Of a stretch of 64,000 nucleotides of DNA, positions 22,999 to 57,600 are shown piece by piece. Both the position numbers and the translations under genes were made by a program. The notes under the pieces are model-generated. The model ran no database searches. It was not told the DNA's origin and saw only the letters and a list, made by a program, of their open reading frames with translations. The stretch lies in NCBI GenBank assembly GCA_976226885.1, contig OZ320316.1, forward strand, positions 44,144,001 to 44,208,000, written 5' to 3'. The stretch is from Iphione sp. A-MEVVRFRX5. Taxonomy: Eukaryota. The first letter of the stretch is position 1. Every line of letters starts with the position of its first letter.

Positions 22999-24414
22999 TT
23001 GGTACTCACGAAGAACAACGTCCAGTTTGACAATGTCAACTACCTTCAGGTGAAGGGCACAGCCATGGGTACCAGAGTGGCACCAACCTATGCCAATCTC
23101 TATATGGCTGACTTTGAAAAGACCCATGTCTACACATACAGAAAACAGCCACACCTATGGAAAAGGTTCATAGATGACGTGTTCATGATTTGGACACATG
23201 GAAAACAGGAGCTGACCTTATTCTTACAACATCTTAACAGTGCCACCACTGACCTACGCTTCACCTCAACTTCTTCTGAGTCCCGAGCCAGCTTCCTTGA
23301 CGTGGTCATAATAAAGGATGGTGATGTCCTATATATGGACCTAGGAGTCAAGCCTACAGATACCAGAACATACCTCCACTACACATCAGCCCATCCTTAC
23401 TCCTGTAAGAAGTCAATTCCTTACAGCCAGTTCCACAAAGCCAAACGCATTTACTCTCGGGAAGCAGACTTCTGGCACCAGGCTAAACTAATGACTGGAG
23501 CTTTTATCAACCGGGCCTATCCACAGACCCTATTGTCTTCTAACCTTGCACGAGTCCATAAACTTAACAGGAAGGGCCTCATCCCCCCAGTGTCCCCCCC
23601 AAACCTCATTTCCCCCACACTCACTGCCAAAGCCCTCCAGAAAGACCAGCACCTCAATGCGATAAACACATATAGCCCGGGCTTTACAGCACTCTGGGAC
23701 ATAATCACCAAAAACTGGCCCCTTTTGGCACGCTCCGTCACCACCATGCACCTCTTCAACACACCCATCTTGTATGGTTTTCGACGTCCGAAGAATCTTA
23801 AGGACTTATTGGTCCACTCCCAATTCCCACCCCTCCCTTCCCCCCACACCAAACATCCAACCACTACAACCCCACCCATCTCCCCCTCCCCCCTTGTCCA
23901 AATCCCACATGGGGCAGATAATAAATCCCTACGTAAATGCCGCACCAAATTTTGCCGCTACTGCCCCCGTCTCAACAAAACAGGGAGAATAAAGAGCACC
24001 ACCACTGGTCGCTCCTACATCTCCAAACATAATGTCACCTGTTGGAGCTCGAATATCATATACTGCATTACTTGCAAGAGGTGCAGAGCCAAATATGTGG
24101 GACACACAAAGAATAGACTCAACATGATGCTTCGGGCCCACTTCTACAACATCTCCCGTGGAATGGGTGATGGCTTCGTCCCTAGGCATTTTAACTCTGG
24201 GGAACATCAGGGGATCCAGGACATTGAGGTCCACGTGTTGGATTTTATCCATAGCCATTCTGGCAGTGTCCGGGCTCTTTCCCTACGCCTCCTTATTGAG
24301 CATCGCTGGATCCACCGCCTAAGGACCCAGGCACCCCTGGGCCTCAACACCATATCATCGGAGACTGACCACCCAGAGTATACATTGCCCCTCCCCAGGG
24401 CCCTAGCCTCGTAA
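22999..24414 (+). pseudogene. Open 471-codon C-terminal part of the PLE polyprotein (RT palm/thumb plus GIY-YIG endonuclease)
   Basis: ORF track 22999..24414. It has no start of its own; upstream parts lie in other frames (22133-22755, 22649-22996). Confidence 0.9.
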
Positions 24415-30053: not shown

Positions 30054-32917
30054 CCCTATAGCGCCGGCTTGTATCCCCAGGGATACACCGTATATGCCGG
30101 CTTGTATCCCTGGGGATACATCCGTGTGGTGCCGGGATGTATCCCTGAGGATACATACATACATTGTTTAGTATGATATAATTATTCTTAAATATACCAA
30201 CAGGTGAAGGGTTTATATTGGGAGATTATTGGAAAATATCATTTTCTATGAATATTTCTTACATTTTCGTAGTAGATAGGTCTTGAGAAGCCTAACCACA
30301 AGAGAATATTTGTAATTATTTGTTTCGTATTGGTTTGCTGGATGACTAGCAGCCGACATTGCGTGTTTTTGTGCCACAGTTCATTGAATAGGGAATCTAT
30401 CATGGAGAATGAGGACGAATTTGACTCTGATGATGGTATTAGGGTTGAAGACATGCCAGATGAATTAAATCGGATTATTGATGGACAGTCCAGCTCTGAG
30501 GATGATTCAGAAGTGACAGATGACAACAACGACAGTGAATATGAAGACGATGATGTGGCATTCACTGAGCTGCTCGCAGTTACCCAAGACCAAATAGATT
30601 ACAGTGGATGGCATACCCTGAAGGCAGGAATAGATGATCCTACACCGAACATTGTATTTGATGAAGCAGAATGTGGTGTGGCCAATGATAGTGGTTTAGA
30701 TGAAACTTCAAGTCCCCTCAGTGTATTTTCACTGTTCCTTACTGTGGATCTCCTGAACATGATTGGAAGAGGAACAAATCAACGTGGCGCTGTTGATGGA
30801 GCTACAAGTCGCACATGAAAAAGTGGGTTGAGATGACAGTAAATGAACTGAAACGTTTTCTTGGACTTGGACTACTGATGGGAATCGACAGGAAACCATC
30901 ACTAAGGAATTATTGGTCTGACTGTGTTTACCTGATGGCACCCATTTTCCCCCATGTAATGACTCGTGATCGGTTCTTGAGTATCCTCAGGTGAGATATA
31001 ATTTTTCAGCATTATATGTGTATGTAGAAATGTGAATTACATGTCACTTTATGCATTTTTTCAACAATAGTCACAAATTTCAGTGAATCTAATGTATTCA
31101 TGTCTTTCTTTTATCACTGTTTACAGACATTTGGCATTATGTGATGCAGAGAGTGTTGCAGACGGTGTACGAGCCCCATTCCACCCGTTATGGAAAATAA
31201 TGAAAATCATCGATGCCTTCAACTCTGCTGCAAAGAAATGGTATAAACCCAAACGAGAGATGTCGGTGGATGAAACTATGGTTTCATTTAAAGGAAAAAT
31301 CTACTGCAAACAGTACATGCCCAATAAGCCCCATAAATGGGGGCTTAAGATGTGGACATTGGCAGAGGCAGCTACTGGTGAGTATGAAGTAATTTATATG
31401 GTCATATTACATATGTATAAATGTGGTGTAAATCAAAAAATTACATTTTGTGTATATTTCTTCAAAATAGCTACATTTATATAAAATACTTAGAGAGATA
31501 TTCTTTTTCTGCAGGTTATGTCTCTCAGTTGTTACCCTACTATGGGAAGGAGCCTCGACATGGTCTACCCCTGGCGGAATTCGTAGTGTCAAAAATTGTT
31601 CACATGGCTGGTGTCACTGGTAAAGGAATAAGACTTTACATGGATAATTTTTTCACAACTGTTCCTCTCTTCAAAAAAATGTATGATTTAGGCATTTACT
31701 GTTGTGGCACTGTACGCAAAAATCGCCGTTTTCTCCCAAGGAATGTCATGAAGAAAAACCCAGTATGTCTTGGCAAAGCTAGGGGATCTATGAAATTTTT
31801 TCTAAGGGTGTTCTCAAACTGTTTGCATGGAGGGATAACAAAGTGGTCCATCTTTTATCTACTTGTCATGGAACTAAAATGGAAGAAACCTCTCGTGCTG
31901 GCAAAGACCCCAAGACAGGAAAGTTTAGCAAAGTAAATATTCAGTGTCCCACTGCAGTGACCCAATACTCAAAATTCATGGGTGGGGTTGACCTATTCGA
32001 CCAATACATTCAATATTATATACATAACAAGAAAACAATTCGCTGGACATTGAAAATTTTCTGGTTTCTTTTGGAATTGATGAAAGTAAATTCTTACATT
32101 ATGTACAAGTCCCTCCACCCTAACAATGCTAAAATGAGCTTTTTGGATTTTTCTTTGAAACTGATTGATGAATTGGTTGGAGGTTTGCCTGTATCGATCA
32201 TTGACAATCCAAGACAACGAGAAAAAAAATCCAGAATAACAAGATTGCATTCACGATGCATGCCAGGAACCCTCCCAAGGAAAGCTCGTTGTAAAGTCTG
32301 TTACATGAGATATTCTGCAGGGCTGGGTGTTAAGCTGGGACAAACTAAATATGGGTGCGAATCTTGTGGAGTACATCTGTGTCTCCCGACCTGTTTCACC
32401 ATATATCACACCCGGCGTGATATAATCGGATTTGACCTAGAGGAATGAGCAGCACTGAAAAAACAATGTCTGACTTGCATGTTCATAAAAAAAGATCAGA
32501 ATAAATGTATTATCAATTACCTTCAATCTCTGTGTCTTTAGTTTGTACCGTAATCCTCATATTGATATTGATCTTGAGCATCATTCGATGACTAGTGTTA
32601 ACACCGTTGGACAAAAATGTAACGTCACCATACTTTTTACGAGTATACATACCACACGTTTCCAGTTTCCTCCTAAGTAATGATTAAAAAGTCTAAAACA
32701 GACAACATAAGGCCAATGATTAATATATATTCTACGTTTCCCAATTCATTTTATTCAGCAAAACCACATATTTTCTCTTAAAATCGATGCAAATTCAGCA
32801 TGACGTGCAGGCGGCCACAAGCATGACCGCAGACTGCCCGGCGCCAACAGTGCGTCACGTCACAATAGGCCCCGGCATTAGTGTCCCGCTCTCTCACCAG
32901 GTGCAGGCGCTGTAGGG
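30054..32917 (+). mobile_element. Full-length piggyBac-like DNA transposon (2864 bp)
   Basis: TTAA at 30050-30053 and 32918-32921. TIRs CCCTATAGCGCCGGC and (reverse complement) CCCTACAGCGCCTGC. Internal transposase. Confidence 0.95.
30342..32448 (+). pseudogene. piggyBac (PGBD4-like) DDD transposase with two spliceosomal introns (30991-31126, 31378-31514) and two frameshifts (about 30810 and 31796-31801)
   Basis: Acidic N-terminus, SPLSVFSLFLT, ELKRFLGL, YWS, MTRDRFLSILR|HL, SVDETMVSFKG, YMPNKPHKWGLK, YMDNFFT, GTVRKNR, WRDNKVVHLLST, YSKFMGGVDLFDQ, and a C-terminal Cys-rich domain RCKVC...YGCESCGVHLC...CFTIYH. Both GT-AG introns keep the frame. Confidence 0.9.
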
Positions 32918-45600: not shown

Positions 45601-48600
45601 GCAGACTGTTTCCCGGCAGTGAATGCTTAGGGCTATGTGTATAGATGCAGTTCTATGGTTAGGCAGGAGGCCTTGTTACTCACTCTAGTGTATTTTGCTA
45701 TCCAGTGGAGTAAGGCAATGCAGGCTGTGCCAGACCTTCCCATGATTGGATTGGCACTGTCATCTGTGTAGATGTCATGGGCTTCAGGGAAGAGCTCTCG
45801 TAATTCTTCCACCTCCACGAGTGCTGTGGTCTTGAGGATGAGTGGGTTGACCTCAGCTTTCTTCAACTGGGGAAGGTTGGCCATGACCTTGACAGGGATG
45901 TCTGCCCATGGTGGTAGGTTTACTGGCTGTGCCTTGGGTATCAGGCTTCACCCTATGCCTTTGGCTCTCTTCATTGCTGCTTTTGTGATGAGCAAAAGTC
46001 TAAGGGCTCTGGTGCCACTCCCCTTGAGTCGCCTCTGGAGAAGTTGTACAAAGCTTGTGTCCAACTTACATGCCATCCTGACAAGGAAGCATGAGTGATC
46101 AGTTAGGATCCTTTCCTTGATGGGTGGTAGTCCTGTCTCTGATTGGAAGTTGATGATGTGTGCATATCTTGGTGCAGTGAGGATTTTGTGAGGAGCTTCC
46201 TCTAGAGACTCTTGACAATGTGGTCAATGGCCACCCTGAGGGTGCGTTTGTCTAGGACTATCCCTAGCTATTTGCAGTTGTTGACCCACTCTATCCTATC
46301 ACCATCCAGAGTTAGCTCCCGCCCTGGTTTCACCTTAGTGGATCACTTTCATCTTCCACAGGGACACCTTCAGTTCAGGGTTCTGGCATCTGGTGAGCAC
46401 TTCCTTTAGGGCATTCGATGCTGTGCTCCAGGCATCAACTCGGTCTCTGCAGATTATTGCAAAGTCATATGTGTAAGAGAGCATGGTCGAGCCTGGGATG
46501 TCATCTGCAATGAACTGTCTCATTATGCTGTTGAATAAGAGGGTCCTGAGGACTCCTTCCTGTGGTACCCTATTCTGAAGACTGTGAGGGGTGGACATTT
46601 TTCCTTGGAAGGTGATGCCCAAGGTGTTATACCAAGCATCCAGGGTACTTACGTGGGCCACCACATGCATGCACATGACAAGGCATACAGTCTGCCTTAT
46701 GGTGTCAGTAAGGTGCTCTCGCTCTGGCTGTACATCCACAGTACTGGTAGCTGTTACTAGAAGCCACCCAAAAGTTTGCCCGGTCAGCTTTTACATGACC
46801 ATACAATGGGCCCAAAGTCTGAACCCTTTGCCTATGTCTGGGTCTTGCAGAAAGAGCTGCCTGTGCACTGTCTGAGTTGTCCCTGGCTGGGTAGTCGAGC
46901 CTGCATTGCACCCAGGGATCAGGTGTCCTGAGGTCCAGTGGTCAGCTGCCTGGGTCTCTCCAGCCACATCAGTTGACGTGGCCAGAGGGGGATCCAGCAG
47001 ATTCCCCCTCCCCTGGAAGCTGCCTCTGGGGGCTCCTGGGGGGCGGGGGTATCCTGGACACGACAGGCCGAGGACACTGGGGGATACCAACATCCATGGG
47101 CTATGCCTACATGACATGCCAGGGATGCTGGAGGGGGAGGGGTGCCATCATATATATCTTGAGGGGGGACTTCCTTTAAGTGCTGGTTGATTAATGCTCC
47201 TATCCCTGGCCAGCGACTCACTCACAACTCCCGGTGTGCTCTGCAGTCTCCCTATCAAGGCCCTCCTCTGGGTGGCCATGGGCCTTCTTCAAAAGGTCTG
47301 CGTGGACTGTGTGTCACTTCCAGCCTGTTCCAATTCAATATACCACAGCAGATAGCCCTGCCTCCACGGTCCAGGTCCCTTGCCACAAGCATTGCAACTT
47401 GGGGGAATGACCCTTCCTCTTGACAGGCAGAAACTGCCACGCTGGGTCACAGACGTTGATATCCTGTGCATGAACCTTTTGATCATACCAGTCCTTCGGA
47501 CACTCCACAAGTCATCATAACTATCGGCAGACTTTTGACACACTCAAATCTTCATACTTTTAAAGTTGTTACATTCCAGACATTTGGCATTTATCTGATT
47601 CAGTGGCATGTTAGGTATTTTACATGAAGGTAACAACTTAAGCATTAATACCAGTTTATGCTGATATAAACACCAGAACCAACTGTTATCATGCTGCCTG
47701 GTTATCCTGACTATGTCACTGCATAATACTGTAGCGTTTCGGTGTTTGGTATGAACAAAATGCGCATTGAGTGTGTTTCTCCGAAAGGGTTCTCGGAGGA
47801 TAATCCTCCGAAATAGCCACCGGTGGCGTGGGGTGGGAAGAACATTCTGGAAACTCCCCTAGGAGGGAGTACGTGTGTACTGAGCATGGCTCGGAAGGTT
47901 CTGGAAAGGATCTCTCTAGAAGGATCCAAGGTAGTATATGCTATGGAAGGTTCTAGAAGGGAACTCTCCAGAAGGATCCTATAGAGAAAGGTAGTATGTG
48001 CTGTAGAAGGTTCTAGAAGCATCCCTCCAGAAAGATCTCTGGGGGAGGGTGTTACTATTTTTAAGACTGTACCATGGCTAATTTTAGAGCCAGACTCTGT
48101 ATATAAGGGCACTGATTTCTTGAATAAAGACAGTTCTCATCCGAACTTGGAAGTGAGAGCAACAACGCATACTCTGTGTGGAAGTTCTTTATTTCACGAT
48201 AGCCATCTGGCCTGACGACGACCGACACGTTACATTTGGTGGCAGCGGTGGGATTCTCTACTCAACTTGGAAGAAAGAGAATCCCCATGGACACGAACAC
48301 GGCGTCTCCAGAGAAGGATGGCTACAGTTTATCGGAATCCGATCGAGATCACTTGCGGCCTATGCGAGAAGGAGGAAACGGTCTCCAGCGAAGACGGTGC
48401 GGCCCGGTCCGCGATTATTTATCGGCAACTGAGCGACAAGGGTCGGAGTACGAAGATTCCGACATGATGAACATGACAGAAGAAATCGCCGACGGATCCA
48501 CGAAGGATCATGAGGAAGGTAATTTGCCCAGTAGAGGGGAAGCGAGTGTTGCCGGAGGACGTGGTGAGATATCGGTAGTTGTCTGTTCTTGCTCTGAGGG

Positions 48601-51600
48601 AGAGGAACAGGAGAAGGATCAGCCACCAGGAGGAGAATCGGTTCGCGTATTCTCTCGGCAGCGGCGACCCCGAAGACTCCTTGAAATAACCTCAGGTGGT
48701 TGTGAGGAAGATAGGAAACGACCAGGCCTTGGTGAAGATAGTGGATCCAACGACGCGACTTTGCCGACAGAGTCATGCAGTCGGCGACGGTTCGACCAGG
48801 AGGTGGAACGGACAGCGAGTCAGGAGGAACCAACCTCCGAATGGGACGGGTTACTGGAGGAATTTGGCGCATTCCTCCGAAGACAGGAGAAACAGGGAAG
48901 ACGGATACCCGGACCAGGGCAGAAACCATCAATGCCCCAAAAGTATAACGAATTTCCGAAATTATCTCCTCCGACAGAAATGAAATCATCTTCTCGTTTG
49001 AAGTTGGTCAAGCCAGAGCGATATGATGGAACGTACGACTGGGAAGACTGGCATTCTCGATTCGAGGAATGGGCAAAAGTAAGTGCGTGGGATGAAGAAA
49101 CTAAGAAGAACATGTTGGTATTGTCCTTAACGGGGGCTGCACGAATATTTTATAGCAATTTAACCTCTGCAGAGACTTGTACGTATCAGCGGCGTGTTAA
49201 TGCCCTGTTTAATCGATTTGGAGAAGGCAGGGAGAAAATTCAAGCAGTTCAGAAGTTGACTACTCTTCGGAGGACTGGGAACCAAACTCCTAGGCAGCTG
49301 GCGAATGAGGTGTGCCAGCTGATGTATCAAGCGTATCCTGATGTGGACAGGGAAACGCGAGACTCTCTCTCGGTGAATTTCTTCCGGAGGGCTCTTGATG
49401 GTGAGATGAAGTTAAGGTGTGCTTGCGCAAAGATAGAAACTCTGGAGGAAGCGATACAAGTAGTAGAGATGGAGGAACGGTATACCAGTAGAGGAAAGAC
49501 TCCGACATCCTGGACAGAAGGAGGTGATGCAGACCAACTTGAGGCGGTAAGGAGAAAAGACGAGGAGAAACTGGCTTGGAGGGATGCTAGACTCTATTGG
49601 AGGGGAGCACCAGCAAGAGAAAGGGTGTTTCCGAAAAAAGGCAAGAAAGGAAGAAATGAGTCGGGAAAAATCGTGTGCTGGCATTGCGGATCGGAGGATC
49701 ATTTCAAGAGAAATTGCCCACACCTGCAGCCGAATGTCAAGCCAGCTGTAACTTTGGTAGAACTTCCGGGAAACGGGGAAGCGCCACCGGCTCTAGCTGC
49801 CAAGTGGGGACGGTGGCAGGTTCAAGTCTGTGTCTCCCTGTAAAAATTGTTGGTCAGAAGATGGATCACTTGATCGATCCGAGAGCTGAGGCAGCTGTTA
49901 CGAAGGAAGAATTCGCTCCAAGTGATACTAGTCAAACACAGTTTTCTGGTGCCACAGAACAGGTAGCTCCAACTTTGGGTCAAGGAGTCATGACATTCGA
50001 AGCAAATGGGTACAAGTACGAGATACCAATAGTTTTTGCTATCATGTGAAGTAAAAGAAGATCATCGGAAATTGAAAGGAACCACCAGGGAAAATGTCTA
50101 TGTGCAGAAAATATTCCGAAAAACAGTTTTTCCGAGAAACTCAAGAAATGCGGTGAGGAGAAGGTCGACATAGGAAGAATGTCTCATGGGTATGGCTGAC
50201 ATGCTGAAGTTTGAGAAGATTCCTTGAGGAAGAATTCGGAGAGTGGTACAACGCCTGCGCGATGCTGGGCTGAAATCCAAACTGAAGAAATGTGACCTCT
50301 TCCTGAAGCATTTCGATCTCTTAAGGCACGTTGTGACAGAAGAAGACATATGCAGAAACACTGAGAAGATTCAAATTGTTGGACATGTACTCGACTTGGG
50401 GTTATGTGTTTCCTCGAAGGGTGACACTATGGGAGAAGAATCATTGGGATAGCAGAAGACACTTGAAGAAGACGCTGGTATGAGCCTCAGAACGATGTGA
50501 CCTTGGAGGACAAGATGAGAAAAGAATTATTGACGATGCTTCCGGCGGTCGAAGAAATCTGCGACCTGCCGAGTTTTTCCAAAGAAAGAAAACTTTGAGG
50601 GCGGTTACAAGAAGCTTCCACCCGGAGGGGTGATAGAAGGTGGAGAGCACTCTTTGCATGTCGGAGCTGCAGGAGCGAATGCGGATGACAGTAGTAGTCG
50701 TCCGTGAACAGTTCGGAGAATCCGCAAAAAGACAGAGTATGGCCAAAGAGTGCGACATCGGAAAAATCCAGAAAATTGCCCTGATTTGGCTCTACGATCC
50801 CCAGTACCAACGGGTGAAAAAGGGCAAGTTAAGTTTCCTTTGGAAGAAGGTCCTCCGTCTTGTACGAACTTGATCAAAGCGGACGTGTAATGTAACATCA
50901 TGAATCAACCCTGGCGATGAAGTATTCCTTTACCGGAAGGAATAGCTGAAAGGGGGTTTTGTGATTCAGAAGCCAGAGGGACACTACAAGTAATTTGTCA
51001 AGCTGTCTCTGAGGGGAAAAACTTCCGAGAGCAATGACAAAGTGAAGCTATCGGAATAGTTCTTCAGTCATGTGGGTAGCAGAAAGGAACGATTTAATTT
51101 GTCATGGGATTAAACGGTTACCTGAAGATTTGAAGTTTGTAAGTGGGACACTACGTCAAGTCCTGCATGGATTTGGGGAAAGAAATTCTCAGCTACAGGG
51201 AATTTTGTCACATGAAGATTATGTGATCAGCGCTATACGATCAGCGAAACTTTGGAAATAAGCAATTCCGAACAATGGTCTTGTATGACTCTGGCAAACT
51301 GCAAACACCAGCAACTGCAGGAAAGGGAATTGAGCTGTCTACACCTGTAAGAAGTGACATACGAACAAGCACGGGAAAAAGGACGGTAGTGCACAAAAAC
51401 AGAATCCACCCGTACCTCGGTGGGAAATTGCCAAAATGGGTAAGAAAGGCCATGCAGAAACCCAGACAAGTCTGATCAACTTGGGTAGGCCTAGGAATGG
51501 TGAAAACTTACCTTGCGGCAGACTAAGTTATTGGTCGGGTTAGCTATTCCTTCTGGTGAAGGAATACTTTGTCCTCCGACGATAACGGAAATACAACAAG

Positions 51601-54600
51601 GAGACTTCAGAAGGGAGGGGGAGGGGTGGGCAGCATTCCGGTCACCTCTGAGTCGGAAGAGAATCAGAGAGAATGCCCACCTCTTCTCCGAAGCTAGCCA
51701 AGTAGGACCAAGCGGATGTATTGGTCTAGGCCTCCTTGATGTGTCTGTGCTTACACATGCTCAGAGCTGTTAGCAAAGAGCAGAGAAGTTATGTCTTCCT
51801 CTACATGAACTGCATCGCCAAAATCTCCCAGAGCAGCTGCTGGGGAAACCGTATAGGTGAAGATGTCGGAAGTAAAGAAGGAAATACAGGTGATAGAATA
51901 AATTTCCATTGTCAAACGGGAGTTTTGGGACCAGATCATAGGGAGTAGTGAGCAAGCAGGAACCAATGTAGCTGACAATTTATCGGAGAAGAAAGAAACA
52001 TTATGGGGAAAAATGGAATCGGAAATAGGAAAGATAATCAAAATCCATCAGTATGCGACCCTATCCTTGAGGAGGGATGGGGTGAATAGGGAGAAATTAC
52101 AAGAACAGCAAAGTAATCCTCCGAGATGAGAAGGCGGGAAATTTCGAATTGCCCGCCGCTGGATAACGCTATCCCAGAAGTGCGCTGGACCGGAACGTCA
52201 TTCTACACACAGCGTCTTCGGAGGGAAGAAGATGTCGTGGGAATGTAAGCAGTGCGTGATCCCGCCTTTTGTCAATAAGTATAACCTTCAACGACACCAG
52301 CGAGAGAAGCATCAGCAGGCCGGCATGGTGAAAATAAGATGGATGGCCTGTCCCTGGTGTCCCGGGAAGGTTTACGCATGTGATTATACGGGGTGGGAAA
52401 GTCACCTTCATAGCCAACATCGGCGAACCGCGGAACACTTCATTGGGCAGAAAGATTTGTATTACATATTTGCTGTCCGCCCAGCTAATTGGAAAATTCC
52501 AGCCGAGGAGGTCGCATCGGAGGAAGATAGAACACAGGCGCTAGAATTAATGAGATTGTGGCGACAGAGAGAGGGAGAGCCCCGCTCGATAGGCTCTTCA
52601 AGGGCAGCCAGTCGAGTGGATGACGGACAACAGCCAAGTACGTCTGCCGGGGCTACTCCGACAAGAAAGATGCCAAAGCGGGGTGTCAAGAAGACAACAG
52701 AGAAGTCAGGAACAGATAAGAAAATGAGATTGGAAAAGGAGGTGGAGCTGGTGAACCAAGGGAAGAAGGCGAAGAAAGTACAGCAACGGGACTCGGAGGG
52801 AAGATCGGAAGAAGACTTGGAAAATCAATCGGAAGAACTGACGGAGACAGGAAAGAGAGGGGAGGAACCAAAGAAAAGCCAGGAGCAAGGGTGCGAACTC
52901 GAAATAAGCGATATCAGCATGTCTTACGATACCCCATCGGTGGTTCAGGCAGCTGATCGTATTTATGAAGAACAGCATGGACGGGCTTCGCCAGCTGGGG
53001 AAACCGTGATCGGTGATAGAGAAGAGCAGGTTGAAGAAGGCATGACAGAAGAGCAAGTTAAAGAACCAAGGATAGAAAGGCAGAAAACAAGACAGCAGAA
53101 ACCATCCGTGGTAGTTCATACCGATGAAGGTATCGGAGAAGGGAGGGATGGTGAGACAGTTCCGCCTGGAGAACCTTCTCCAGCTGATGGACTTAACATA
53201 CAGGCCTCGTTGAGTGAACCCCCCATTGAAGAATTCCAGGAACCGGCGCTTCCAGGAAAGTCTCTGACAGAGACATCAACCGAAGACGTCTGGGTACCGG
53301 AGAAGTCACCACCACTCCGGAACGAAGGAAGTGCTGACAAGGGCGGGGCGACGCAACATGAGTTAGAAGATACCGCGTCTATTCCGAAGGGACCCCCTCC
53401 AGACAGGCCGGGCGAGGATCCAGTCGAGACACCTGTGAAGACGACCACGCCTCCGAGACCTGGCTCCTCTAAAACAACAGAAGCAGGGGAGGAACCGGTG
53501 TCCCTAGCATTTCGTAAATGGGTGGGAGCTACAGCAGATGGACTTGTGCGGCCCTTCTGTGGCGTCGCCCGGAGGGTGCCCACCCAACCTGTCACGACAG
53601 CGCCCAAGTGTATCTGGCCGCTGGAAGGATGGGAGAAGTTTTCAGCAGAGCAGAAATACGCTGTGTCTCTCTTGATGGCTACTGTGACTGCAATGGGTGA
53701 AGGTCCACTGGCCATCGGAGATCCCATCAAGCCGCTGAGGGATCGCCCTTGGTTATTGCTTCCTGGAGCACGCCGACCAGGGACAACTGATGCGTGGGGT
53801 CTGCCTAATGCGGAACCTAACTATGAGGTGGAACACCACAATGCCACAGTACAACACTTGATTACCTTAACAGACCAGTACGCTGACGACCCGATCACCG
53901 AAACCGAGCTAGACATCCTCCAGATGATGGTTGACGACATTGAATCTAAACAGCAAGGCTCCTTCCAGGCACAGGTCCGGAAGAATACCGATCCTCGGAT
54001 AGAAATGCTAAGCATGGACGATCTCTAAGGACATTAGAATGACTTAATTTGTTCCTTCCCCCCTGCATGATTGACAGACGTTTGAAAATGATGACCCTCC
54101 CTTGTTCTAAGAAAAGGAAAAAAAAAAAAAGGACTTATAATCTCTGTGAGGTTAAACCAAGAAAAAAATAATAAAAAGGAAAAAAATTACAAAAACCCCC
54201 TTTTAACCATGTCTTAGGTATTAAGAATGAAGGTTGAAACGAATTGCTGTCAAAAATTTTCTTGTGAATAGGTATAAGTCCAGAAATTCCGAAAGATTCT
54301 TCGGAAGAAAAGTTGGTAAGTATAGGTGAGTGAAAACCCTGTTTTCCCTCTTAAGGTGGGGGAAGTGTAGCGTTTCGGTGTTTGGTATGAACAAAATGCG
54401 CATTGAGTGTGTTTCTCCGAAAGGGTTCTCGGAGGATAATCCTCCGAAATAGCCACCGGTGGCGTGGGGTGGGAAGAACATTCTGGAAACTCCCCTAGGA
54501 GGGAGTACGTGTGTACTGAGCATGGCTCGGAAGGTTCTGGAAAGGATCTCTCTAGAAGGATCCAAGGTAGTATATGCTATGGAAGGTTCTAGAAGGGAAC

Positions 54601-57600
54601 TCTCCAGAAGGATCCTATAGAGAAAGGTAGTATGTGCTGTAGAAGGTTCTAGAAGCACCCCTCCAGAAAGATCTCTGGGGGAGGGTGTTACTATTTTTAA
54701 GACTGTACCATGGCTAATTTTAGAGCCAGACTCTGTATATAAGGGCACTGATTTCTTGAATAAAGACAGTTCTCATCCGGACTTGGAAGTGAGAGCAACA
54801 ACGCATACTCTGTGTGGAAGTTCTTTATTTCACGATAGCCATCTGGCCTGACGACGACCGACACGTTACAATACTTTGGATTATTCTGTGTATTTTATAT
54901 AAAGACAGTTTTATGCAAGTTGTCACATTTAAGCAGTGTCAGTTTTTTTTTATCTAGCTAACATATGACTGCTGCTCAAGTTAGACATGTCTAGTGACAC
55001 ACTCCTAGTGTATGTATATCTTATGGTGTCCACCACACTGTGTGATACAACTGATATGCAGCATAATTCATTTTATTACTTACTTTATTATATTCTGTTC
55101 ACCACGTTTTTCTGTTCACGTTTCTGTTCATTATCCATGAAAAACATTGTTTGTAACAACAAAGATGGTTATAAACAACCTATAAACTAAACAGACAACC
55201 TGTGTCATCATTGCCTTGGCTGTAGTCTCTGCACCCACCTCTGCCATGGGGTGGGTGCAGGGGTGGGCGCCTGTGTCCACTTGGTAAAATGGTTGGCAAT
55301 CATTATGATGTGCCACTTTCCCCCCTTGATGGCTGGGAATGGTCCACAGACATCAATGGCCACTATCTCCCAGGGGCCTGGTACCACTCCTAGCTGGAGC
55401 GGGGCCTGATATTTCCATCCTGGGTCCTGTTTCCTGCTTCTGGCAAAGGAGGCAAGCACAGTTCCACCCCTCTACATCTCTGCTCAGTCTGGGCCAGAAA
55501 AACTTGAACCAGTCGCCGTCTGGGTCGGTAGAATATTTCCATGTCATAGGTAATGGACCGCCTCCAACCAGTGAGCCAGTTGGCCGTCGGACAGATTGAA
55601 GTTACAAAGCCAGTGGAATGAACTGTGGTCCATTCAGATAACCATTCGCCGCCCTCCCATATACGTCTCGAACTTCTGCCGACCAAACACGATCACAAGC
55701 AACTCTTTCTGGATGACACAGAAGTCCCTCTCAGGTCAGGTCAGATTCCAGCTAGTACAAATTCCTGCTCATTTTGTTCCTGGGACAACACAGCGCCAAC
55801 GGTATCCAGCATCGGCGGTTGCCCGACTTGTGGGTAGGCCAGCATAGGAGCCATTGTCAAATGAGTCTACATCATGAAAAAGGCGGCCTGGCAATCTTCT
55901 TTCCATCAGAATTCTTGCCTCTTCTCCAGGAATTCATGAAGGGGGGCGGGGGCACCTGTGAAAGCTCCGGTAGTACAAGCATAACCCTATGAAACTCCGA
56001 AGTTCTGTGAAGCACCACCAGGCCAGCCACTTCTCCAGATCACCTTGGTCAACACTTGATGTTCCAGAAAGGCCACCTCCTGCCAGAAGAGTTGACATTT
56101 AGCCAGATACATCTTCAGCCCTGCTTGGCGTAACTGCCCAAACACCTCTTGTAGCCGTTTCATCATCTCAGCCACAGTCCATCGAATGACGATGATGTCG
56201 TCCAGGTACACCAAGCAGCTGGTCCCAGTGAACCACAGCCTCCATCAGGCATTAAAAGGTGCAGGGCATGTTGCAGAGCCCAAAGGGCATCACCGTGAAC
56301 TGGCAGAGCTGCCCTGGTCTTCTCCATGTCCTCTGGGTGCACGGCTACCTGCCAATATCCACTGGCTAGGTCCAACACTGAGAAACACCAGGTCCCTTTC
56401 AGCGTGTCCATGGTATCATTGATGTGGGGCAGGGGGTTCACATATTTCTTCGGCACTCGGTTCAGGGACTAGTAATCAATGCAAGAAGCACCAACTGTGG
56501 TACACACCATGACAATGGGAGAAGCTTACAGGCTGATTGAGGGCTCCAGCATCCCTTGGTCCACCATCTTCTGTGCCTCTCACTGTATGGCAGCCCTCTT
56601 CACTGGTAGATGAATCCATCCTTGTACCTGCAGTGGACTCTCATTCACGCAGAGGATCCTACCAGCTGCCGGTTTCAAATCGTGGAGGTGCAGGGCATGT
56701 GCAATGTCCGAGTGCCAACTCTCCCTCTCCAGGGTGAATTTGTCCCCCGTTGATAGTTGCAGTATGCAAAGATGCTTCTTTAGTTACATCTCAGCCATCA
56801 GCTCGACCTTGCTCCCCTCCTCTTTGGCTGTGGTCACCCGCCTACTGCGAGGGGGCAGCCACCACTTTGTTTTCCGAAGCTGCCTCCACTGGCAAAGCTT
56901 GGGGCACTCCGACCTTAAATAACCGGGATCATCATAGTTGAAGCAGTTCTTCCAAATGGTGTATTATCCCTCCTTACCACTGGTTGGTTGTGCAGTGACT
57001 AACTGCAGGGGGAGCTGTTCCATGGTCCCTGTAGCCTTGGGGGCGGGTGCTGCTGGTGATAGCATTGGCTTGTCTGGCATGTTGGCCTCCAACCGGTGTA
57101 TATTCTTCACAGGAGTGCATCCCTGCTTTACCTCCTTAGTGTGACTCAGCCATCTGGGCAGTGAACAATGTCTCAAGGAAAGTGGCCATCCGTGCTTCTT
57201 GGGTGACCCACTTCATGACCTTCTCATTCACAGAGGCCTCCACAAAATATTTGCGGCATATGCAATCCCTCCATTTGCCACTGGCCTCGGGATAAGCCAG
57301 TTGTACCAGGACTTCCACCTCATCAAGCCCCTCCTCCTTGCCTTGCTTTCTTGCCTTGAGCTGCTGCATGTTGCTGTCAGTATGGTGCTTGGATTGGAAA
57401 CGCTCAGTGAAGGCATCCACCAGGTCTTGATATGCTCCCTGTCAGGCCACATCATTGCTAGAACTACATAGCATGCTGTGAGCTGCCTTGTTCTAGGTAA
57501 TGCCTAGTTCCACCGCCTTGTCCTTCTACATCCAGTCATTTGCCATGGTGACAAGCTCGATATGTTGGAGGAAGTTTCTTAAGGGGATACTTCTTTCATA

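Follow-up and report, generated by a model that had tools for sequence, protein, structure and literature searches.

Does the long terminal repeat (LTR) of an animal retrotransposon work as a heat-switched promoter? This question is raised by the element at positions 47730–54870 of the window, i.e., of the whole stretch of 64,000 nucleotides analyzed here, whose LTR contains four exact heat-shock elements (HSEs) upstream of a TATA box. Judged from its sequence, this LTR is a strong candidate for heat-switched jumping. The LTRs of the window copy and the signals in and around them are arranged as follows.

47726–47729, plus strand: target-site duplication, left copy, ATAC (the same four bases at 54871–54874)
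47730–48234, plus strand: 5′ LTR of 505 bp with TG...CA ends (mismatched to 54366–54870 only at 48022 and 48144)
47840–47852, plus strand: HSE1, GAAcaTTCtgGAA, distal (motif search; core intact in 84/91 sampled LTRs)
47892–48060, plus strand: three tandem U3 units of 52, 60, and 57 bp, each opened by an HSE (59–75% pairwise identity)
47894–47906, plus strand: HSE2, GAAggTTCtgGAA (motif search; intact in 36/46 long-class LTRs)
47946–47958, plus strand: HSE3, GAAggTTCtaGAA (motif search; intact in 46/46 long-class LTRs)
48006–48018, plus strand: HSE4, GAAggTTCtaGAA, 82 bp upstream of the TATA box (intact in 91/91 LTRs)
48100–48106, plus strand: TATA box, TATATAA (intact in 90/91 LTRs)
48123–48128, plus strand: AATAAA, putative poly(A) signal (intact in 89/91 LTRs)
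48130–48135, plus strand: initiator-like ACAGTT with a predicted start near 48132 (read from the sequence)
48237–48256, plus strand: primer binding site of 20 nt, complementary to the 3′ end of host tRNA-Leu(AAG/UAG)
54353–54365, plus strand: polypurine tract AAGGTGGGGGAAG, directly adjoining the 3′ LTR
54366–54870, plus strand: 3′ LTR with the same four HSEs (54476, 54530, 54582, 54642)
54871–54874, plus strand: target-site duplication, right copy, ATAC (matching the left copy)

The element exhibits the hallmarks of Ty3/Gypsy LTRs, namely, TG...CA ends, a tRNA primer site, a polypurine tract, and a short duplication, and its two LTRs differ by two mismatches in 505 bp. A preliminary description of this DNA had already called the repeat a retrotransposon LTR, which these features confirm. 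The primer site begins two bases past the end of the 5′ LTR and pairs without mismatch with the 3′ end (last 17 nt plus CCA) of a host tRNA encoded in multiple copies; the anticodon loop of this tRNA reads AAG or UAG, and its long variable arm is that of tRNA-Leu. Transcription is predicted to start near 48132 (LTR position 403), 32 bp after the TATA box. Two further stretches of U3 can be described. In its distal part, at 47794–47810 (LTR positions 65–81), lies a perfect palindrome with 8-bp arms, CGGAGGAT-A-ATCCTCCG, which is not obviously constrained because several of its positions show variants common to multiple copies. In the interval that separates HSE4 from the TATA box, at 48041–48059 (LTR positions 312–330), the stretch GGGGGAGGGTGTTACTATT is as invariant over 91 LTRs as the proximal HSEs and may be an additional promoter element.

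The four exact matches to GAAnnTTCnnGAA were located by motif search at 47840, 47894, 47946, and 48006 in U3, that is, 82–260 bp upstream of TATATAA with start-to-start spacings of 54, 52, and 60 bp; the earlier claim of four perfect HSEs ahead of a TATA box is therefore exact in all its positions. The canonical HSE nGAAnnTTCnnGAAn is found in U3 upstream of the predicted start, an arrangement expected of heat-activated, HSE-bearing LTR retrotransposons such as ONSEN and the M. lignano families. The copies of the four sites in the 3′ LTR sit 6,636 bp downstream of the 5′ set, and outside the two LTRs, the motif search gave no match to GAAnnTTCnnGAA in the 64-kb window. In dinucleotide-preserving shuffles, the mean was 0.83 matches per window, and eight matches were not attained in any of the 100 shuffles.

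Three of the sites had been placed in a tandemly repeated U3 unit, and this holds for the last three: the units at 47892–47943, 47944–48003, and 48004–48060 are 59–75% identical by direct alignment, and the stretch around HSE1 is only 32–40% like them. Tandem Repeats Finder reported no array, the number of units being too small and their divergence too high. Across the three units, all nine core columns are invariant, as opposed to 24 of the 51 other columns (p=0.003). The chance estimate given in the preliminary description, one match per 4^9 positions, overstates the independence of the sites since duplication generated at least three of the four. The invariance of nine core positions amid diverged units is the better argument. 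Of the degenerate extensions that had been pointed out next to the sites (cTCtaGAAggaTC), the presence stands but not the conservation, as their positions vary freely among copies.

The host possesses the machinery that could read such sites. Its genome encodes HSF-type DNA-binding domains, one of them with the recognition-helix motif SFIRQLNLYGFRK. The only intronless HSP70 gene found (L097; G000:C15:73682263-73687077, minus strand) contains GAAtgTTCgcGAAgcTTC, a four-unit perfect HSE, ~110 bp upstream of its TATA box, and several near-HSEs lie 50–120 bp upstream of TATAAA as well; this gene is a useful positive control for heat-shock experiments. Among named sequences, the host HSP70 comes closest (76–78% identical) to inducible HSP70s from molluscs, a nemertean, a brachiopod, and annelids. 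By this resemblance, the host is a lophotrochozoan-type invertebrate, in agreement with the animal host proposed earlier. The wording "HSF1" used in that proposal is a vertebrate name, and only "the host's HSF" is justified here. That the LTR itself is the promoter of a host heat-shock gene is ruled out, as it occurs in thousands of copies and is followed by a primer site and gag.

The internal region of the window copy contains the following features.

48287–49843, plus strand: gag ORF, 518 aa, with a CCHC zinc knuckle (Pfam zf-CCHC)
49844–52129, plus strand: internal stretch devoid of both long ORFs and pol domains (89–90% conserved in other non-autonomous copies)
52232–54028, plus strand: accessory ORF, 598 aa from ATG (frame open from 52130), containing a weak C2H2-like finger

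The window copy has no pol domain, and the 2.3 kb between gag and the accessory ORF are devoid of long ORFs; hence, it is non-autonomous and must borrow pol in trans. Autonomous copies, with LTRs ~97% identical to those of the window copy, code for PR-RT-RNaseH-IN. In one of them (L031; G000:C15:71749200-71758520), the gag, pol, and third-ORF frames are open, and the pol domains follow each other in the order RVP, RVT_1, RT_RNaseH, Integrase_H2C2, and rve. Because copies with such similar LTRs show this order, the family is Ty3/Gypsy (Metaviridae), to which the window copy belongs only as a non-autonomous partner. The Gypsy identity asserted in the preliminary description is thus upheld by way of the autonomous copies, the window copy itself being pol-less. 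Membership in Ty1-Copia is ruled out by the position of the integrase after RNase H.

Compared with an autonomous copy, the window copy is only 49% identical in gag and 36% in the accessory ORF (protein), whereas the LTRs are ~97% identical (DNA). Most likely, the pol-less partner took over the LTR of its helper or still exchanges LTRs with it, and the pair with its near-identical LTR bears on how parasites track the promoter of their helper. The best external relatives of pol are 45–51% identical; for the nearest of them, L147, neither an LTR pair nor an HSE was seen in the 6 kb on either side. An exact-sequence look-up of the window gag gave no match, and the element contains no recognizable envelope gene. 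For the accessory ORF, no family above the cut-off was found in Pfam and none in the protein atlas. This third ORF (52232–54028; L031:6849-8426) spans ~530–630 aa, lies downstream of pol, and is kept in pol-less elements too. It consists of a conserved N-terminal WMACPWCP stretch, an acidic and variable middle part, and a conserved C-terminal region of 190 aa. Elsewhere in the window, remnants of other mobile elements occur: the C terminus of a piggyBac-type transposase (DDE_Tnp_1_7, zf-Tnp_2) is encoded at 31843–32445 (plus strand), and the ORF at 22999–24411 (plus strand) gave a GIY-YIG match below the threshold.

In the genome of 1.18 Gb (89 contigs), 1,018 junctions between LTR and primer site were counted within three mismatches, and a first look gave >3,000 LTR candidates; the family comprises at least 1,000 internal copies. 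Among 12 complete elements sampled, 10 have LTR pairs with 0–2 mismatches and 11 sit at separate insertion sites between perfect 4-bp target duplications, with two of the four-base sequences recurring. The sampled elements, which include both element types, are independent and very recent integrations, and the recent activity surmised earlier is borne out by the same LTR pairs and duplications.

The U3 region is probably, though by no means certainly, an enhancer–promoter in which stress-bound HSF at the HSEs drives genomic RNA from ~48132. Herein, the host HSF would trimerize under heat or proteotoxic stress, the trimer would bind the HSEs of U3 (chiefly the two nearest the TATA box), and the genomic RNA would be transcribed from about 48132 under the control of bound HSF. 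As the AATAAA is located just upstream of the predicted start, only its copy in the 3′ LTR would be read, and the R region would be short. A single LTR would in this way serve two partners, an autonomous Gypsy-type element (gag, PR-RT-RNaseH-IN, and accessory ORF) and a pol-less one. The motifs and their placement suggest HSF binding and heat inducibility of the LTR. That heat raises actual transposition is more speculative, and silencing by the host could block the induction.

A variant of this mechanism accepts the binding of HSF but sees its main benefit in expression in the germline or embryo, with heat having little effect on heritable transposition. HSF roles in gametogenesis that are independent of stress are known from other animals and favor such a use of the sites. 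A retrotransposon spreads via germline insertions only, and this family has reached at least 1,000 copies; moreover, an HSE-bearing LTR of Macrostomum can also be activated in embryogenesis (PMC12801592). Nothing in the sequence separates this variant from simple heat induction. The multiple canonical HSEs near the TATA box, however, represent a stress-inducible design, as in the HSP70 of the host, and we regard the germline or embryo as the main beneficiary as unlikely.

For the preferred reading, i.e., stress-bound HSF acting at the HSEs of U3, the conservation of the sites among LTR copies was analyzed. Ninety-six 5′ LTRs were sampled by an exact match to the junction of LTR end and primer site, which is random with respect to U3, and 91 of them were alignable; tests on shared variants include the 5′ LTR of the window and thus comprise 92 LTRs. 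The LTRs form two classes of approximately equal size, one of 505 bp with four sites and one of 453 bp with three, which lacks one 52-bp unit (LTR positions 176–227, missing in about half of the LTRs). The 453-bp class is more likely a deletion derivative than the ancestor because the two units involved differ by 25%, whereas the pairwise divergence of LTR copies is only ~5%.

At least two canonical sites are kept in all 91 LTRs and at least three in 82 of them. Variants common to at least two copies, which must have passed through replication, affect 2 of 36 core positions compared with 112 of 419 other non-CpG positions (p=0.004; 92 LTRs) and with 6 of 16 positions of the two-base spacers (p=0.007; 92 LTRs). 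With random masks of the same shape, a depletion equal to that of the core was obtained in 0.26% of trials. At the core, private variants show no significant depletion (7/36 versus 118/419; 92 LTRs), which indicates a similar mutation input. An event-based test of singleton versus shared variants in the manner of McDonald and Kreitman was not significant (p=0.1).

The four sites differ in their conservation. The TATA-proximal HSE3 and HSE4 are intact in 46/46 and 91/91 LTRs, respectively, a level of 100% that is attained by just 5 of 493 same-shape masks; in HSE4, not a single variant occurs at any core position in the 91 LTRs. The distal HSE1 and HSE2 are conserved at the average level of the LTR when ranked among same-shape masks. 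HSE2 is changed from GAA to GTA in one sub-lineage, and sub-lineages with one distal HSE lost still multiplied. A diverged LTR copy (L124; 76–80% identical) retains the TATA-proximal HSE only. Free mutation of the GAA/TTC positions among copies, which the preliminary description had named as evidence against its proposal, is thus absent at the two proximal sites, with the distal sites being average. The GAA/TTC triplets of the proximal HSEs look selectively retained. Part of this signal may stem from a generally constrained core promoter since the stretch from HSE4 to the TATA box is strongly conserved too.

These data also bear on the possibility that the motifs are functionless, a chance HSE having been multiplied by tandem duplication and a burst of the family, with the youth of the copies mimicking conservation. 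At least three sites derive from one duplicated unit, the copies are young with a pairwise divergence of ~5%, and the distal sites behave neutrally, all as expected from such a history. On the other hand, the units are 25–41% diverged and yet have kept all nine core positions, shared variants spare the core while occurring in the spacers, and both proximal sites belong to the top 1% of conserved masks, so that an absence of function appears very improbable. Just as improbable is a coincidental match to the HSE in which the GAA/TTC pattern serves another factor, i.e., a reader of the TTCTAGAA palindrome or the accessory zinc-finger protein: the three unit sites do have the palindrome TTCYRGAA in common and the accessory ORF of the elements does contain a weak C2H2-like finger, but three constrained 3-bp blocks at a spacing of 5 bp with free 2-bp spacers (6/16 positions with shared variants) are the pattern of HSF, and STAT-type sites have a spacer of 3 bp, not 2.

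Activation by the host's HSF, if it takes place, would concern a large part of the perfect HSEs of this genome. Genome-wide, perfect GAAnnTTCnnGAA occurs 21,236 times versus 10,384 times for the reversed control, and family-type sites (GAA-S-R-TTC-Y-R-GAA) occur 9,569 times versus 611 for their control. From these counts against the controls, about 40% of the genome's perfect trimeric HSEs belong to this Gypsy family. With the family subtracted, perfect HSEs are still ~1,900 above the reversed-pattern control, and the repeated occurrence of variants such as GAACTTTCTTGAA suggests that further repeat families may carry HSE-like sites. In a broader scenario, the family and its pol-less partner would have seeded ~9,000 perfect HSEs (~40%), heat would lead to bursts of transposition, and the LTRs would reshape the heat-shock response of the host by control of neighboring genes or titration of HSF; on the sequence data, this scenario is rather doubtful. 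If the LTR is heat-inducible, it offers a tractable system for asking whether bursts of transposition in an invertebrate are caused by warming episodes and whether host genes gain heat responsiveness from dispersed LTRs.

The principle of a heat-switched LTR is already published, both for ONSEN and for Ty3/Mdg4 families of the flatworm Macrostomum lignano. ONSEN (ATCOPIA78) is the classic plant case of a heat-activated retrotransposon. In Arabidopsis and other Brassicaceae, it provides the model in which HSEs in the LTR recruit the heat-shock factor of the host. However, ONSEN is a plant Ty1/Copia element, whereas the family described here has the pol order of Gypsy and acquired its HSEs independently. 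With its integrase after RNase H, the family parallels ONSEN without being related to it. Direct repeats in U3 of murine leukaemia virus LTRs are tandem enhancers. They resemble the U3 described here in being a duplicated unit with factor sites, which in this family accounts for LTR classes with four and three sites; the factor sites differ, and the element here is without a recognizable envelope gene.

ONSEN had been invoked as the precedent in the preliminary description; it is a known one but not the sole one, as HSE-dependent activation has been shown in M. lignano (PMC12801592). In this animal, Ty3/Mdg4 families independently gained one to four canonical HSEs, and four strongly induced LTR families, all with canonical HSEs, respond to heat by >250-fold (PMC12801592). 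Mutation of the HSEs abolished the heat response of an LTR reporter (PMC12801592). Two HSE-bearing families with one site each are not heat-induced (PMC12801592), which demonstrates that the motifs alone are no guarantee of a response. Other animal cases include HSE-bearing Helitrons in Caenorhabditis elegans and weak or unvalidated examples in Drosophila and a coral (PMC12801592). Helitron1_CE of C. elegans likewise disperses HSEs across the genome of an animal as it moves, but it is a rolling-circle DNA transposon and not an LTR retrotransposon. Literature searches gave no such report of HSEs in LTRs for molluscs or other lophotrochozoans.

The closest counterparts are the M. lignano families (e.g., Mlig-id115|Mag; PMC12801592), which are likewise animal Ty3/Gypsy elements with one to four nGAAnnTTCnnGAAn in the LTR upstream of a TATA box and start site. 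They belong to another host phylum and are unrelated in sequence, the best external pol matches of the family described here being 45–51%. They occur in 4–20 copies, as opposed to at least 1,000 elements here. In contrast to M. lignano, the sites here are located in a tandem unit, the LTR is common to a pol-less partner, and the heat response is a prediction from the sequence. If heat-inducible, this LTR would extend the animal cases beyond the one flatworm and would be the first of them to exist in thousands of copies. Compared with the published systems, what stands out is the copy number, the share of the genomic HSEs, and an LTR common to an autonomous element and its diverged pol-less partner.
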